Shown: positions 37,484-43,790 of the stretch, one piece after another
Numbering within the stretch: the first letter of the stretch is position 1
Layout of the letters: each line of letters starts with the position of its first letter
Assembly: GCA_001179505.1 (NCBI GenBank)
Contig: CDMY01000246.1
Span: forward strand, 62,001 to 126,000
From: Vitrella brassicaformis CCMP3155
Taxonomy: Eukaryota; Protista; Chromerida
Direction: 5' to 3'
Length of the DNA: 64,000 bases
The notes under the pieces: generated by a model
Told to the model about the DNA's origin: nothing
What the model saw: the letters and a program-made list of their open reading frames with translations, nothing else
Databases searched by the model: none
Position numbers and translations under genes: made by a program

Positions 37484-39308
37484 TCAAAGGCACATGTGTT
37501 GTCTTCTCCAGTCTGCCAACCCCTCACACACAGGCCTTAGAGCGTCAGAAGCCTTCTCATACACACACATCAGCTCACAAAACGCCCCCGCTTCACTCAC
37601 ACACGGCTCATAAGTCACACCATCTGCCAGGCCCTGTGTCTCCGCCATGGCCGCGCCAGCCAGCCCAACCAGCGAAGGCTCACAGGGCACCATCACACTC
37701 CTGTTGAGAGCGGTGCTGAGTGTCTGGGCGAGAAGAGAAGAGTTGGCGCATCCCCCAACCACCACAACCGGCTGAGATGAAGACACATCCACAACCGATG
37801 GCATGTACTTCTCGAGGTGTCGAATCAGCCGGGCTGCCTGGAACGCCACGCCCTCGTGGACGGCGCGGCAGAGGTCGGCAGGCGAGGTCGATGCCGTCAC
37901 CCCGATAAACGCGCCGGATGCATTTGGACCTGCCCACACAGACATCAAGAGATACCTCCACGGCATCCAAGCAGCGAAAATACCCATGGTTCCGCACTTA
38001 CAGTTGTCAGGCGATCTCTCCCCCTTGAGGTGCGGCAACCAGAGCACGCCTCCGCCACCAACTCGACCCTCAGACGCCATAGCCTCCATCCCTTTCCCCA
38101 CGCCGGCTCCGATCTGCAGGCCCTCCAGCCACTCAAAGTTGCCTCCAGCCGTCAGCATTGGCGCAGCAAGGACAACACGGGAGGGATCATAGTGATACGC
38201 CAACGTGAAGATCCCCTCAGTGGCCGCAGGTGGGGACGAGCCAGGGGGTAGCAGGGTGGCTGCCCAGCCAGATGTGCCGAGGTAGAGATAGGTGGGACAG
38301 ACAGACGCCGGCTGTGTGTTGGAGGTGGGGGTGGGGGCGAAGGAGAGGGCGCCGTGGGTGATGGAGGCGACGTCTCCACCGGCGTGATAGACTTGAGCGC
38401 CTCGGATCCATTGCAGCACTCTGTCAGCGCCATCCACATTGGCGACACTCTTCCCTCCCACCGTCACAGCGCCAACCACCTCCCCTGCTGCCGCAATCCG
38501 AGGCAGCGCCTCAACCAACCCTTCAGCCACACCAGTCCTCAGCAGAACCTCCTTCGCCCACAAGGCTTCCCCTCCGGCGTCATTCTGCCCCCTCCACACC
38601 TTCTCCATCTCATGAACGCTCAGCAGTCCAGTAGTTGACGCGTTGGTCACGTCCGTCACGCACTCGCCCGTCAGCCAGTGGATGAGATAGTCGGCTGCGC
38701 CGAGCAGGACTTGTCGGCATTGTCTAGCTGCGTCGGGATGGTGCTTCATGACCCAGAGCAGCTTTGCGGGGAGGGACGATGGCCCCTTGAAGGATAGCAA
38801 GGTGGACGAAAGGTCAGGAGGGATGGATGCCGCCTCGTCGATGGCGCGGCTGTCGCTGTAGAGCAGGCAGGGAGCGATGGGGAGCAGGCCGAGAGCCGCA
38901 TCTCCATCTGTGTGGCCGAGCATCATCACTGAACAGAGAGAGGAAAGGACACACACAATGAGTGCGCTCATGGCCCTGTTGGGTGTGCCTTGCTGACGTG
39001 TTTGCATGAGTCCGCTGACGCAGATCTTGGTCGGCTTGCAGTGCGGCTCTTGTGTCATGATGGCATCCAGCCCCTTGACGACCATCTCAGCCCAGCAGCT
39101 GGGGTCCACTTCGCCCTGCGCCATCTTTGTCCGGCACGATGGCGGATAGCGCTGCGTGCTCGTTGCGATGATGGACACTCTCGATGCCTAATCAGCAAGC
39201 AAACTGAGGGAGAAGGCAACTGCAAGGAGAGGGGGTCGCGCTGCTTACCTCGTCTGTGTTTATGAGTGCCACTTTCACGCTCGTCGAGCCAAGATCTACA
39301 CACAGCAT
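37484..39308 (-). CDS. FGGY-family carbohydrate kinase (xylulokinase-like)
   Basis: MLCVDLGSTSVKVALINTDE|ASRVSIIATSTQRYP, VDPSCW, SGLMQT-LMML, LLYSDSRA, LPAKLLW, GAADYLIHWLTGECVTDVTNASTTGL, GGDVAS, YLGTSGW, WLPHLKGERSP, AVHEGVAF and VVGGCANS. Confidence 0.9.
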
Positions 39309-39410
39309 GATGAGCTCTGACGATGAGGATCAACCGCGGATCTGGAGGAGGAGCTTCTCGAGCTCGCGTCTGATCCGGGCCGAATTCAGAGCGTGAGAAT
39401 AGCCGACAGG

Positions 39411-42134
39411 ATGAGGGACAGGGACAGATCTCTAGAAGACGTCCGGGAGCCCGAGCGCGTCGAACCCGTCACCACCATCGTCCTCAACTGCTGCAACCTT
39501 GGTCAGCTGATGAGATGAGATCCACAGATTTGGATGGATGAGGACGCCCAGTGGTATGGTGTGTGTATGCGTCTGCCGGTCTGTGCGTCAGGTCGCGACT
39601 ATGCCTTCTCCAAGTTGAGTGCGAGCCCTCCGCCTACGAATTTCGACTGGAACGGCGTGCGGAAGGCTTTGGAGTACTACGACAGCCGCAAGAAGAAGGC
39701 CAAGATCATGGGCATCGTCACCCACCGCATTCTCAGAGACCACCCTGTGAGGTGCCAGCCAGATACGATGGATGGATGGATGGATGTGTGAAAAGAATCT
39801 GTGTGTGTGTTGTTGTTGTGTTGTGCAGCTGCCGAAGGACCTGCTTCAGAGGAAGTTCATTCGTGCCGAGTGGAGCGACGCGCCGACGAGAGATCTGCCG
39901 GATGTGGACATGACGAGCACACTGAGGACTGGTGAGGCTCGGTGCGGGAAGACGCACAGAAAGAAATCCCTCTCGCTCACCGTGTGTTGTGTGTGATCAG
40001 CACAGGAGCACGACGCTCAATTCGTGTGCAACGACGAGTACCTCTGCTGGGAGGAAGACCCACCCAACGACATCAGGAAGTTCATCATTGGGTCAGCACG
40101 CCTCCACACAAACGCACCTCCACACACTCGTGTCGCTATACCGTTTGTTTGTGTGTGTGCTTGTGCTGCCGACATCTGTCTGATTCATGTCAGCAAGGGT
40201 GCGTCCCACCAGGTTCAGTATTTGTTTCTGCCGAGCGGTCACTTCATGCCCAGCCAAATCCCGTGGCCTGAGGGGCCGCCCAACCCGCCGCCACACCTGC
40301 CCAACAGAACCGCTAGAGGCGCACACACATACCGACAGGTGAGCAGGTGGGGTGGGTGGCAAGGGTGGTGGAGAGTGGATGGGTGTGTATGTGTGTGTTG
40401 TGTGTGTGTTGTGTGTGGTGCAGTGTTTCATGACGCGTGACCGTTTGTCGACCATGCTGCGCGATGCCCAAGTGAGCCTCAGCAAGGCCGACGAGGAGCA
40501 ACTTCTGCAGAAACTCAACAACATAGAGGTGAGGCCACCCAGCCACAACCCCTCTACACACACACACACACACACACACATACACACACTGCTGGCACGA
40601 GTGTGCTGTGTGCTGTGCGTTGTATGGGTCAGATGGATTTGATGATCGACCCCAACACCGACCCCCGCCCGACGTTGTCCAAGAACGTGGCCGCCACCGT
40701 GTACGAGCGGGCCCTCGAGTCGGGCGTCGGTGATGTAGAACCGGTGGGTTCCTTCAACGCACCCAACACGACGCCACAGCACACCCCTTTGAATCTGTGT
40801 GTTATGTTCGTTGTGTGTGGCAGTTAGAGTGCGTGGCGTTTCTGCTGCACTCGCAGGCCATAGTGCAGCACATCTACATGGACGTAAGGACGGACGGATA
40901 CACAGACATACATATATACGCGCAGCGAGGCAGCCGACAGGCCAAAGGAAGAAATGACGTGTGGTGTGGTATGGTCCGTGGTCTGCTGTGTGTGTGGTGT
41001 GCAGGTGTATGCGGAGGTGACAGTGCGGCTGGCGGAGTACTTCGACTCCAAAATGAGCTCCAAAAACTTCGCAAAGTATAGGCATTTAGGGAGGGTGGCT
41101 CACACGCAGCCATCCATCCATCCATGCATCCATCGGGCATGCACATATGTGTGGTGTGGTGTGTGTGGTCAGGTTGGTGGTGCGTCAGTGCGAGCAGTGT
41201 TTCGAGGAGGAGGGCATCAAGGGCGCCCTCTGCGTTAGCGGAATGAGTACACGCACACACACTGACCCACACACAACAGTACAGTACAATGCCACAGACA
41301 CATCTTCTGTCTGTCTGTTCCTCTCTCTGATCAGACGACCGCAGCACCCCCACGTGTTTCAACTTCGTCCGACGCCTGCTCGGCACACTCAAACTGCTCG
41401 GTCGGGCCGGTGCACACACCACACACAACACATGACACGTGTCCGTCCAGTCCATGGTCACTCGTCATTTTCGTCGAATGCATTTCGTCTGTCGCTGCTG
41501 AATGAATGTGTTGATTCGTTCGTTCGTTCGTTCAGGTCGTCTGATAGCGAATGGTGTGTGTCAGCAGCCGTCCGTCGTCTTCGACATCGCCCGGAGCGTC
41601 CAGACCGTCGGAGGCGAAAACTGGAAGGCCGAATGGCACCTGGTCCGGGGGATGTGATGTGCACAGGCAGACAGACAGAGGATGCTCACACGGTGGTGGT
41701 GTGTTCTTCTAATTTGCAGGAGGGTTTGTGTGCGTTGCTGGCCTCCGTGACCTCCATGCTGGCCAAGGACGTACGCAGCGTACAACGACCCTCTTTATCT
41801 CGTGTGATTCAGCTGATGTGTGTATGTGTGTGTGGTGTGTGTTTCCCTTGGCAGCCTGTTCGCGTGAAGGATTTGGACGAGGTCTACAACAAGCTGACGC
41901 AGCTGAGCAACAGCATCGACAGGAAGCGCAAACAACACATCAAAGACCTCATCAAAGTCACTCACCGACACACACGCGCACCATGATCGATATGCATCTC
42001 TGTATGTGTGGGTGCAGGTCGTCCGCGACATCCGTGCCAGCTGCGCCAAGGCCACCCCCGCGCAGGCGTCCGATAGCCCAGGCGCCTCACCAGCTGCAGC
42101 GTCGTCAAGTGCGGCGCGTGTGCCCTCCCAGTGA
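39411..42134 (+). CDS. Fusion protein: Regnase/Zc3h12a-type PIN (NYN) domain + eIF4G-type MIF4G domain
   Basis: PIN: TTIVLNCCNL|GRDY...FDWNGVRKALEYYDSR...DVDMTSTLRT|AQEHDAQFVCNDEY...DIRKFII|G...[12 protein letters not shown]. MIF4G: AATVYERALES...P|VYAEVTVRLAEY...NFAK|LVVRQCEQCFEEE...RRLLGTLKLL|GRLI...EGLCALLASV...DEVYNKLTQL...HIKDLIK|VVRD. Stop at 42132-42134. Start is uncertain (39411, or 39307 via a frameshift). Confidence 0.8.
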
Positions 42135-42375: not shown

Positions 42376-43790
42376 ATGTTTTCAGGACTTCATAGCAATG
42401 TTTTTGGCCAGGCTCGCCCGTCGCCTCAGCCGCGGGCGCTGCTCGAAGACGCTCTTCTCTTTGCCCGCGCTGCTCGCAACCCCGCCGCACCTGTGCTTCG
42501 TCCCATCCCTGAGGACCTTCCGGCTCCTCCTCGGAGCCCTGCCCGTCCGGCCGCTCCCCGCCGTGCTCGCAACTCTCCTGTGCCGGTGCGTTTCCCCAGT
42601 GTCGACGCCAACCTCATCGCAGTGCTTGACAGAGGTGAGTGACCAACGACACAGACGATAACTCGTGACACAAAAATCATCTGTTTGCCTGTCTGGTGGA
42701 AACAGTGCCTGACGAGGAGTTTGCCGATGACGTGCCTCGGTGCCCGCTGACGCTCACCGTGCCGCGGACACCCGTGACCACACCGTCAGGTCACGCAACG
42801 AACACCAAACGCTCAAGCAAACGCTCATCTTCTTGTGATTGTCTTCTGTGATGCGCACCATTATGCAGGCAACTGCTACGACCTGTCCCCTCTTCGCAAG
42901 CACATCCGCACCAACGCTCCCTACGCCAAGTCGCCCATGACGCGACAGCTGCTGCGCGAAGAGGATCTGCGTCCGGACCGCTCCGCCCTGCACCACATCG
43001 AAAGATGCGCCAAGAAGGTAGCTGCCTGCCAGCATACACGCCCACACACACGGAACATCCGGACGGGCAAGTTTGTTTGTGTGTAGATTTGGGATGACCA
43101 GCAGGCGGCGATTCAGCAGGCCAGTGAGAGTGCATCGGCGGCGGCGGCGGCGGCGGCGTCCTCAAACGCACACGATGACAACGAGACTGACCAGACCAGC
43201 AATAGTACGCACGTACCAACAGATGCATCATGGACCTTTGTGTCATGGTGCTGTGGTGCTGTGCTGTGTTGTGTTGTGTTGTATCGTGTAGGCATGACTC
43301 TTGTGAAGGAGCTGTGGGGGCGCTACAAGCATAAGATCACCATGACACACAATGACCTGACACCGACACCCAAACTCATCGATGCGGTGAAAACACCATC
43401 ACAGCACAACACAGCACAACACAACGCATGCCTCTGCGCGCCTCTCCGTCTGTGTGTATGCTGTTCAGTTCCTGACCGACAAGCACACAGACACAATGGA
43501 TGTGCTCGAGTGGCACAAGGAGCAGATCAAGAAGCAGTCCAAGAAACACGTAAGGACCCCCACACACACCAACACCACATCACACCAATGTGTGTGTCCA
43601 CTTGTATCAGCTCAAGGAGATTCATGACGTCGTGTCGCATTCTTTCGAGAAGGAGATGGTCGCGTGGCTCAATAGCTACAGTCGCACAACCCAGCAGGCC
43701 GGCTACACCAAACGACGATCCCTCACAGGCTTCCACCCCACACTCATCCGTGATGCTGTCTCGGCCATTCTCAAGGAGGCGCTCAAGTGA
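42376..43790 (+). CDS. U-box domain protein (putative E3 ubiquitin ligase)
   Basis: Spliced VPDEEFADDVPRCPLTLTVPRTPVTTPS|GNCYDLSPLRKHIRTNAPYAKSPMTRQLLREEDLRP fits the U-box consensus (CPIT...PV.TPSG..YD...I..H...P.TRQ.L...DL.P). Helical C-terminus ends ILKEALK-TGA. Confidence 0.8.

Follow-up and report, generated by a model that had tools for sequence, protein, structure and literature searches.

We analysed a 64,000-nucleotide stretch of the genome of the chromerid alga Vitrella brassicaformis CCMP3155 (contig CDMY01000246.1, assembly GCA_001179505.1; the whole stretch is referred to as the window, and positions are counted from its first nucleotide). The gene described here occupies 39411-42134 of the forward strand and encodes a protein, CEL96794.1, in which a strongly diverged and most likely inactive nuclease domain of the Regnase/Zc3h12a family is joined to a domain resembling the MIF4G domain of eIF4G. 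Built from the window DNA, the gene has 15 exons and 14 introns of 61-135 nt each, all of them with GT-AG borders, and its open frame of 1449 nt gives a 482-amino-acid (aa) translation that is identical letter for letter to CEL96794.1 (UniRef A0A0G4EJA2). The public annotation has the same span as this 15-exon model.

An earlier prediction, made by a model from the DNA letters, had treated the locus as one spliced gene rather than two, and transcript evidence bears this out. In three runs (X1, X7 and X8), drawn from at least two studies, the Logan contigs cover the exons only and support all junctions, 11 of them as explicit GT..AG joints and the other three (39746/39829, 40338/40424 and 41770/41855) by deduction from uninterrupted record coordinates. 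A single contig of 2825 nt (X7 record 9) extends from 39368 across all exons to past 42400, and the NYN and MIF4G halves are therefore carried on one mRNA. No base differences between the transcript contigs and the genome were seen over the gene, so that assembly error does not explain the two unusual residues discussed below, Asn26 and Met110. The first ATG in the assembled transcripts is that at 39411, preceded by an in-frame TGA at 39324.

The N-terminal half and its catalytic columns

Standard searches pass over the N-terminal half. Pfam, including the family model PF11977, gave no match at E<=10 for the whole of CEL96794.1, its halves, sub-windows or exons (the single-exon pieces being too short for such queries), and the precomputed Pfam record likewise lists no domain. 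NCBIfam has no match to the protein, and phmmer against the PDB, with exon pieces and with the whole protein, returned chance matches and artefacts only, among them designed PPR repeats and chemokines.

For a comparison at the family level, we scanned metagenome contigs with the back-translated motif G[IV][IV]VSND.[YF]RD, which yielded 120 loci, nearly all of them genuine Regnase-type domains, and chose 19 complete and diverse domains for a family alignment, every one of which (19/19) matches PF11977 (best E 4.4e-69). Short open reading frames (ORFs) near-identical to vertebrate ZC3H12A/C motifs (L118, L060, L074, L025, L111, L063 and similar), which are probably animal and possibly human DNA in the metagenomes, were kept out of the alignments, models and individual searches and were included only in two bulk passes over all fetched loci; L118, L060 and L074 fell below the length needed for the ORF set. 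Compared by hhalign with the resulting 19-domain profile, aa 1-195 of CEL96794.1 matched over 139 columns, spanning residues 20-173 (Prob 79.4, P 1.5e-5), with a score of 38.9 against a mean of 13.6 for 297 shuffled sequences (standard deviation 2.7, maximum 27.0) and 13.1 for the reversed sequence. A local hidden Markov model of 15 family members gave the N-terminal half 8.2 bits, a value reached by 0/3000 shuffles. Pairwise alignment of CEL96794.1 to a single real ZC3H12C segment is marginal (p ~0.03), which explains why ordinary searches fail. Two further approaches contributed little: profiles seeded with short Regnase or eIF4G motifs and run against the PDB have circular scores and served for residue mapping only, and a MAFFT alignment with three short motifs taken from the original prediction left these scattered and was dropped.

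Structural modeling gave a consistent picture. AlphaFold2, supplied with the 19-sequence alignment, returned a model with a mean predicted local distance difference test score (pLDDT) of 77.6, rising to 85-95 in the core blocks, and a predicted template modeling score (pTM) of 0.71, compared with a pLDDT of 39 in the single-sequence run; the high confidence implies that the sequence is compatible with the NYN fold. The first 22 Foldseek matches to the alignment-based model were MCPIP1/Regnase-1, ZC3H12B, ZC3H12C and KHNYN (E from 5.5e-7), with PRORP coming next, and VIA-align superimposed residues 19-174 on residues 134-296 of MCPIP1 (3v34_A) with Z 15.0 and a root-mean-square deviation (rmsd) of 2.6 A over 136 residues. 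Ranked by VIA Z, the Regnase and KHNYN structures stand at 14-15, PRORP at 8-13.5, FEN1/EXO1 at 7-8, Utp24 at ~6.5 and the NYN domain of MARF1 at 6.1. The ESM Atlas, whose own model was made without a family alignment, points in the same direction as the AlphaFold model: by features, the clusters nearest to the N-terminal half are NYN/Zc3h12a-like (0.89-0.90), and seven clusters, each belonging to PF11977 or PRORP, match the Atlas model with a template modeling score (TM) of 0.58-0.68.

Together, these results make it very probable that aa 20-173 of CEL96794.1 form a strongly diverged NYN (PIN-like) domain of the Regnase/Zc3h12a type, rather than a domain of some other PIN family. The segment-by-segment alignment with the Regnase-1 PIN domain on which the original prediction was built proved to be real and collinear, and its register is reproduced by HMMER, hhalign and MAFFT against real PF11977 domains. 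The checks it had proposed fared unevenly: plain HMMER comparison with PF11977 and PF02854 found no match even at E<=10, and the combination of AlphaFold and Foldseek succeeded for the NYN half, in the match to MCPIP1, but left the C-terminal half without a Foldseek match at E<=0.001.

The catalytic centre of Regnase-1 consists of four Asp that stabilise Mg2+ (PMC4772114). Over the columns from Asp141 to Asp244, the same register was obtained from local HMMER, from hhalign in both global and local mode and from MAFFT, and it agrees with the initial reading that the first Asp is replaced by Asn and the D226 equivalent by Met. All 19 family members have Asp in both of these columns, where CEL96794.1 has Asn26 (Asp141 column) and Met110 (Asp226 column). 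Asp109 occupies the Asp225 column, which is Asp in 18/19 members, and Asn29 occupies the Asn144 column, which is Asn in 19/19. The Ser242-Asn243-Asp244 columns correspond to Cys126-Asn127-Asp128; conservation within the family is uninformative there, because the search pattern demanded that motif and thereby fixed the family state, whereas the other four columns were unselected. Over the domain as a whole, CEL96794.1 is identical at 17/38 columns in which at least 15/19 members share a residue. Judged by its sequence, then, the domain has lost two of the four Asp of the Mg2+ site and kept the equivalents of D225 and D244, and is a structural member of the family and not a canonical enzyme.

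Regnase-1 carrying D226N/D244N is inactive, retains RNA binding and is usable as the secondary PIN of a head-to-tail dimer (PMC4772114), and in Tetrahymena Smg6L the equivalent of Asp141, Asp820, matters for nonsense-mediated decay (NMD) (PMC5499736). Given the loss of the Asp141 and Asp226 equivalents, the NYN domain of CEL96794.1 is most likely a pseudonuclease, which may still be able to bind RNA and may also, or instead, bind a partner NYN domain.

Degenerate sites were also encountered among the metagenomic loci. Two natural NYN domains (L010:1350-2753 and L022:168-1151) have a degenerate DD pair, reading AAD and IAD instead of YDD, and in the first of them a VWA-like domain follows. Catalytic Asp have thus been lost in the Regnase-type NYN family outside nematodes as well.

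The C-terminal half and the distribution of the architecture

In characterised relatives, MIF4G domains are docking platforms for DEAD-box helicases such as eIF4A. The corresponding Pfam model, PF02854, gave no match at E<=10 to CEL96794.1, whether queried whole, as halves or as sub-windows; UniRef names A0A0G4EJA2 a 'MIF4G domain-containing protein', a name whose underlying signature is not visible. Atlas features place the C-terminal half with MIF4G/eIF4G clusters at 0.88; against an eIF4G2 (DAP5) cluster and a MIF4G cluster the Atlas model scores TM 0.72 and 0.71, with 226 aligned residues, and the next family stands at <=0.37. The single-sequence AlphaFold model, a weak hint at pLDDT 39, contains ten helices between aa 216 and 456. 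Searched with this poor model, Foldseek gave its highest target TM to the MIF4G domains of DAP5, eIF4GI/II and yeast eIF4G (0.58-0.63, E 0.02-0.13), and the longest VIA alignments were those with the yeast eIF4G chain of an eIF4A complex (2vso_E, Z 11.4, 198 residues) and with DAP5 (4iul_B, Z 10.7, 202 residues). A Z of ~11 is not decisive, because designed helical repeats reach equal values.

Sequence comparison gave further support, in that the MIF4G segments singled out in the original prediction find collinear counterparts in real eIF4GII sequence by Smith-Waterman alignment without any seeding. Residues 41-105 of eIF4GII align with 266-324 of CEL96794.1 at a score of 53, which was reached by 2/3000 shuffles (p<=7e-4), and residues 179-237 align with 390-450 at a score of 56, reached by 0/3000 (p<3e-4); the spacing between the two matches is 74 versus 66 residues. 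We conclude that aa ~236-455 are likely to be a MIF4G domain of the eIF4G/DAP5 type, an assignment less firm than that of the NYN half. A candidate eIF4E-binding motif (YxxxxL-phi) in the linker was rejected on sequence, as the nearest string, Y193RQCFMT, is a misfit.

No second protein with this combination of domains was recovered. A word-index search of 5.8 billion clusters returned CEL96794.1 itself and nothing else, for the whole protein as well as for aa 1-195 and aa 196-455, and an exhaustive representative search with an exon 4-5 piece gave CEL96794.1 as its only true match; the other match of that search, P0002, resembles the query only in a low-complexity stretch that comes from an intron, and was set aside. 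No related loci were found in viral and metagenome contigs or by tblastn on plasmids, and scans of viral contigs with back-translated motifs of Regnase-type or eIF4G-type genes gave either nothing or irrelevant matches. The Atlas contains no large cluster resembling the whole protein, and its clusters nearest to the NYN model combine PF11977 with UBA_6/Regnase_1_C, with the KH domains of N4BP1, with S1 or with PPR/PRORP, never with MIF4G. In ten long metagenomic NYN ORFs, the NYN domain is accompanied by UBA_6, Regnase_1_C, KH_N4BP1, VWA or nothing further, and not by MIF4G; among the ORFs of the metagenome loci that we fetched, none resembles the C-terminal half of CEL96794.1. A full-text literature search for 'NYN domain' together with 'MIF4G' found no description of such a fusion. 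These architecture searches were limited in scope, and a blank result is no proof of absence in unsampled protists.

The fusion of a (pseudo-)NYN domain to MIF4G is therefore unprecedented among the collections searched and known from V. brassicaformis only, and it is built of known parts. With respect to novelty, the original prediction holds for the architecture, since no other NYN-MIF4G protein was found. A naturally dead Regnase-family domain as such has precedents: pseudonucleases of this family are already known in C. elegans, and what is new is the fusion to MIF4G, not the dead site.

Two other layouts were seen among the environmental sequences. Four metagenome or metatranscriptome ORFs of 730-860 aa (L006:24-2216, L014:152-2356, L051 and L081:3903-6485) end in a PF11977 NYN domain (E 1e-19 to 1e-21) whose strand beta-2 is followed by a long insertion; ahead of this domain lie ~560-700 residues that have no other Pfam match, a layout resembling the alveolate Smg6L type. 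Three related ORFs of ~410 aa (L038:5306-6550, L018:1885-3105 and L082:3357-4574) place PF11977 at the N-terminus, as in CEL96794.1, but continue into a ~250-residue tail that belongs to no Pfam family and is not MIF4G-like.

Gene structure and neighbouring genes

The features of the gene and its surroundings are collected in the table below.

Table. Features of the NYN-MIF4G gene and its neighbours (positions in the window; residues of CEL96794.1; columns numbered after Regnase-1)
Feature	Position	Strand	Content
FGGY-family carbohydrate kinase	37484-39364	-	FGGY_N and FGGY_C matches
5' untranslated region (UTR; extent of assembled transcripts)	39368-39410	+	no ATG ahead of 39411; contigs start at 39368 (X7), 39380 (X1) and 39383 (X8)
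Exon 1 (aa 1-30 + 1 base)	39411-39501	+	strand beta-1 TTIVLNCCNL; Asn26 AAC 39486-39488 (Asp141 column); Asn29 39495-39497 (Asn144 column)
Exon 2 (aa 31-82)	39592-39746	+	NYN helix alpha-1, strand beta-2
Exon 3 (aa 83-116)	39829-39931	+	Asp109 39907-39909 (Asp225 column); Met110 ATG 39910-39912 (Asp226 column)
Exon 4 (aa 117-146)	40001-40091	+	Cys126-Asn127-Asp128 40027-40035 (Ser242-Asn243-Asp244 columns)
Intron 4	40092-40193	+	102 nt, in frame, stop-free
Exon 5 (aa 147-195)	40194-40338	+	last NYN strands with the family FMP motif, then Pro-rich linker of low model confidence
Exon 6 (aa 196-230)	40424-40528	+	helical linker before the MIF4G-like domain
Exon 7 (aa 231-267)	40633-40743	+	MIF4G-like HEAT domain begins at ~aa 236
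Exon 8 (aa 268-287)	40824-40883	+	MIF4G-like domain
Exon 9 (aa 288-310 + 2 bases)	41005-41075	+	MIF4G-like domain
Exon 10 (aa 311-335)	41173-41246	+	NFAKLVVRQCEQCFEEE aligned with eIF4GII NFRKLLLNRCQKEFEKD
Exon 11 (aa 336-357)	41335-41400	+	RRLLGTLKLLG helix
Exon 12 (aa 358-393)	41536-41642	+	MIF4G-like domain
Exon 13 (aa 394-410)	41720-41770	+	EGLCALL aligned with eIF4GII ECLCRLL
Exon 14 (aa 411-444)	41855-41956	+	last HEAT helices
Exon 15 (aa 445-482 + TGA)	42018-42134	+	MIF4G-like domain ends at ~aa 455, then Ala/Ser/Pro-rich tail
U-box protein	42376-43790	+	321 aa
RNA-dependent RNA polymerase (RdRP)	~48070 onward	-	annotated, 2754 aa; PF05183, PF26253

Retention of intron 4 would add 34 residues inside the NYN domain; none was seen in the transcript contigs. 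Upstream, only ~4 nt separate the first exon of the FGGY kinase gene from where the assembled transcripts begin, and the two genes are arranged head to head with almost no spacer. Downstream, the U-box gene lies on the same strand as the NYN-MIF4G gene, and the long X7 contig continues for 1067 nt beyond 42400, indicating read-through or UTR overlap with the U-box gene. The RdRP gene is convergent, three genes downstream and 6 kb away; the large single ORFs of its region gave no Pfam match individually. Its proximity is of note because Regnase-family proteins and RdRP pathways are linked in nematodes. A functional link between this gene and the NYN-MIF4G gene was considered, and we treat the proximity as no evidence for one, as the two are three genes apart on opposite strands and the arrangement may be coincidence.

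Proposed function and comparison with known systems

We propose that CEL96794.1 acts as a non-catalytic adaptor, a reading to which we assign a probability of roughly 55%. The dead NYN domain would hold RNA, or would be the 'secondary' partner of a catalytically active NYN nuclease in the same cell, and the eIF4G-type MIF4G domain would dock an eIF4A-like DEAD-box helicase. The helicase could thereby be brought to the RNAs held by the NYN domain, or be linked to the active NYN nuclease, with the effect of regulating mRNA decay or translation; decay, repression and activation are not distinguishable by sequence. Of the original proposal of a pseudo-nuclease tethered to a MIF4G scaffold, the part that stands is structural, namely a single transcript and protein, a Regnase-type NYN domain that has lost its D141 and D226 equivalents, and an eIF4G/DAP5-like half.

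Several observations weigh against the adaptor proposal. The NYN model was built on a Regnase-family alignment, so its matches in the PDB are not independent of the hypothesis behind that alignment, and neither domain of CEL96794.1 is matched by Pfam, by NCBIfam or by phmmer against the PDB. The structural support for MIF4G comes from models of low confidence (pLDDT 0.59 for the Atlas, 39 for AlphaFold), and generic helical repeats also reach Z ~11. No orthologue was found that could show purifying selection. Finally, Asp104 and Asp107 lie near the site, and either might compensate as an acidic residue.

These two residues bear on an alternative in which the NYN domain still cleaves RNA, using a smaller or differently arranged metal site (Asp109, Asp128, Asn26, Asn29 and perhaps Asp104/Asp107), and the protein is a nuclease docked to the translation machinery through MIF4G. 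Such an enzyme would account for the retention of two of the four Asp and of the conserved Asn, and for the survival of S-N-D as C-N-D; moreover, Tetrahymena Smg6L lost its NMD function only in part when its Asp141 equivalent was changed to Ala (PMC5499736), and the family member L010 likewise lacks one Asp of the DD pair. We nevertheless consider residual activity unlikely, as both lost positions are Asp throughout the diverse family set, Met at the Asp226 column is unable to ligate metal, D226N/D244N abolishes the activity of Regnase-1 (PMC4772114), and those C. elegans relatives whose sites have degenerated are pseudonucleases (bioRxiv 10.64898/2026.09.04.749402). The loss of catalytic residues could also be read, together with the extreme divergence from both parent families and the failure to detect a relative among 5.8 billion clustered proteins or elsewhere in the collections searched, as the mark of a young or drifting lineage-specific chimera without selected function, transcribed and with its frame still open but en route to decay. 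Against this, the 1449-nt frame is open over 15 exons, its 14 GT-AG introns are intact and correctly spliced in three runs, and fold-defining positions are kept at ~20% identity (17/38 conserved columns; core pLDDT 85-95), which argues for long-term selection on the fold and renders drift an improbable account of the gene.

A narrower alternative, which overlaps with both of these, is that the C-terminal half is a generic HEAT/ARM-like repeat whose eIF4G-like motifs arose by convergence, in which case the helicase-docking argument falls. The missing matches to PF02854 and, at E<=0.001, in Foldseek would be expected of such a repeat, and on the poor model designed repeat proteins and importins reach the Z of eIF4G. 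Yet the Atlas sets the MIF4G clusters (TM 0.71-0.72 over 226 residues) apart from all others (<=0.37), the two collinear unseeded eIF4GII matches have p<1e-3 each, the low-confidence model has ten helices, the number found in a five-HEAT MIF4G domain, and the UniRef name agrees, so that we give a generic repeat little credence.

Regnase-1 needs the UPF1 helicase. Regnase-type nucleases more generally need helpers, as seen in the dimerisation of Regnase-1 and in the dependence of RDE-8 on the pseudonuclease NYN-1 and a pseudohelicase. If the adaptor proposal is correct, the fusion in cis of a dead Regnase-type domain and a helicase-docking-type domain would present the coupling of NYN domains to helicases as a recurrent solution, now outside animals, and would offer a compact protein in which to ask whether a pseudo-NYN domain binds RNA, completes the active site of a partner, or does neither. 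The case concerns one species and an orphan protein, with a function proposed from sequence and models. Both of its domains escape standard Pfam annotation, which suggests that comparable architectures in poorly sampled protists may be under-counted.

Among known systems, CEL96794.1 has its fold and family in common with Regnase-1/MCPIP1 (ZC3H12A), ZC3H12B-D, KHNYN and N4BP1 of PF11977 (best PDB Z 14-15, rmsd 2.6-3.5 A), and the motifs xxhhhDGxN of beta-1, the DD helix, the SND strand and FMP are collinear between them. It differs from these proteins in its ~20% identity, which puts it beyond the reach of Pfam's model, in the Asn and Met at the Asp141 and Asp226 equivalents, and in having a MIF4G-like domain in place of the UBA-like, CCCH zinc-finger, KH and Regnase C-terminal domains. 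In structure and in sequence, aa 236-455 match best to the MIF4G domains of eIF4G, DAP5 (eIF4G2) and PAIP1, which have the motifs NFxKLxxxxCxxxFE and ExLCxLL in common with this region; CEL96794.1 differs in lacking MA3 and W2 domains, an eIF4E-binding YxxxxL-phi motif and a PABP-binding part.

With SMG5 and SMG6, CEL96794.1 has in common the design of a PIN-like domain on a helical scaffold, which in those proteins acts in mRNA decay, and the PIN domain of SMG5 lacks catalytic residues. SMG5 and SMG6 differ, however, in the PIN subfamily, in the helical module (14-3-3-like/TPR) and in domain order, which is reversed. Smg6L of Tetrahymena and other alveolates is similar in that it, too, joins a Zc3h12a-like NYN domain of an alveolate to a helical interaction module, here one of mRNA surveillance; in contrast to CEL96794.1, its NYN domain is C-terminal, keeps the catalytic residues and is needed for NMD, and its partner module is EST1/14-3-3-like (PMC5499736).

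The C. elegans pseudonucleases, Regnase-family relatives with degenerate active sites, are like CEL96794.1 in having a naturally degenerate site in a Regnase-type NYN domain, and one of them, NYN-1, helps form a cleft and docks the nuclease module on the pseudo-DEAD-box helicase MUT-15 (bioRxiv 10.64898/2026.09.04.749402). The homology is supported at the family level, and Vitrella has no known active partner nuclease. As a speculative extension to which we attach a low probability, CEL96794.1 might be a single-chain counterpart of NYN-1/MUT-15, in which the dead NYN domain would pair with an active Vitrella NYN nuclease of the Smg6L type or Zc3h12a-like, and MIF4G would recruit and activate an eIF4A-like helicase, coupling unwinding and cleavage in NMD or in RdRP-based small-RNA amplification. 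In their organisation, the C. elegans pseudonucleases are single-domain proteins whose helicase-like partner is bound in trans, whereas in CEL96794.1 a domain of the helicase-docking type is fused to the NYN domain in cis.

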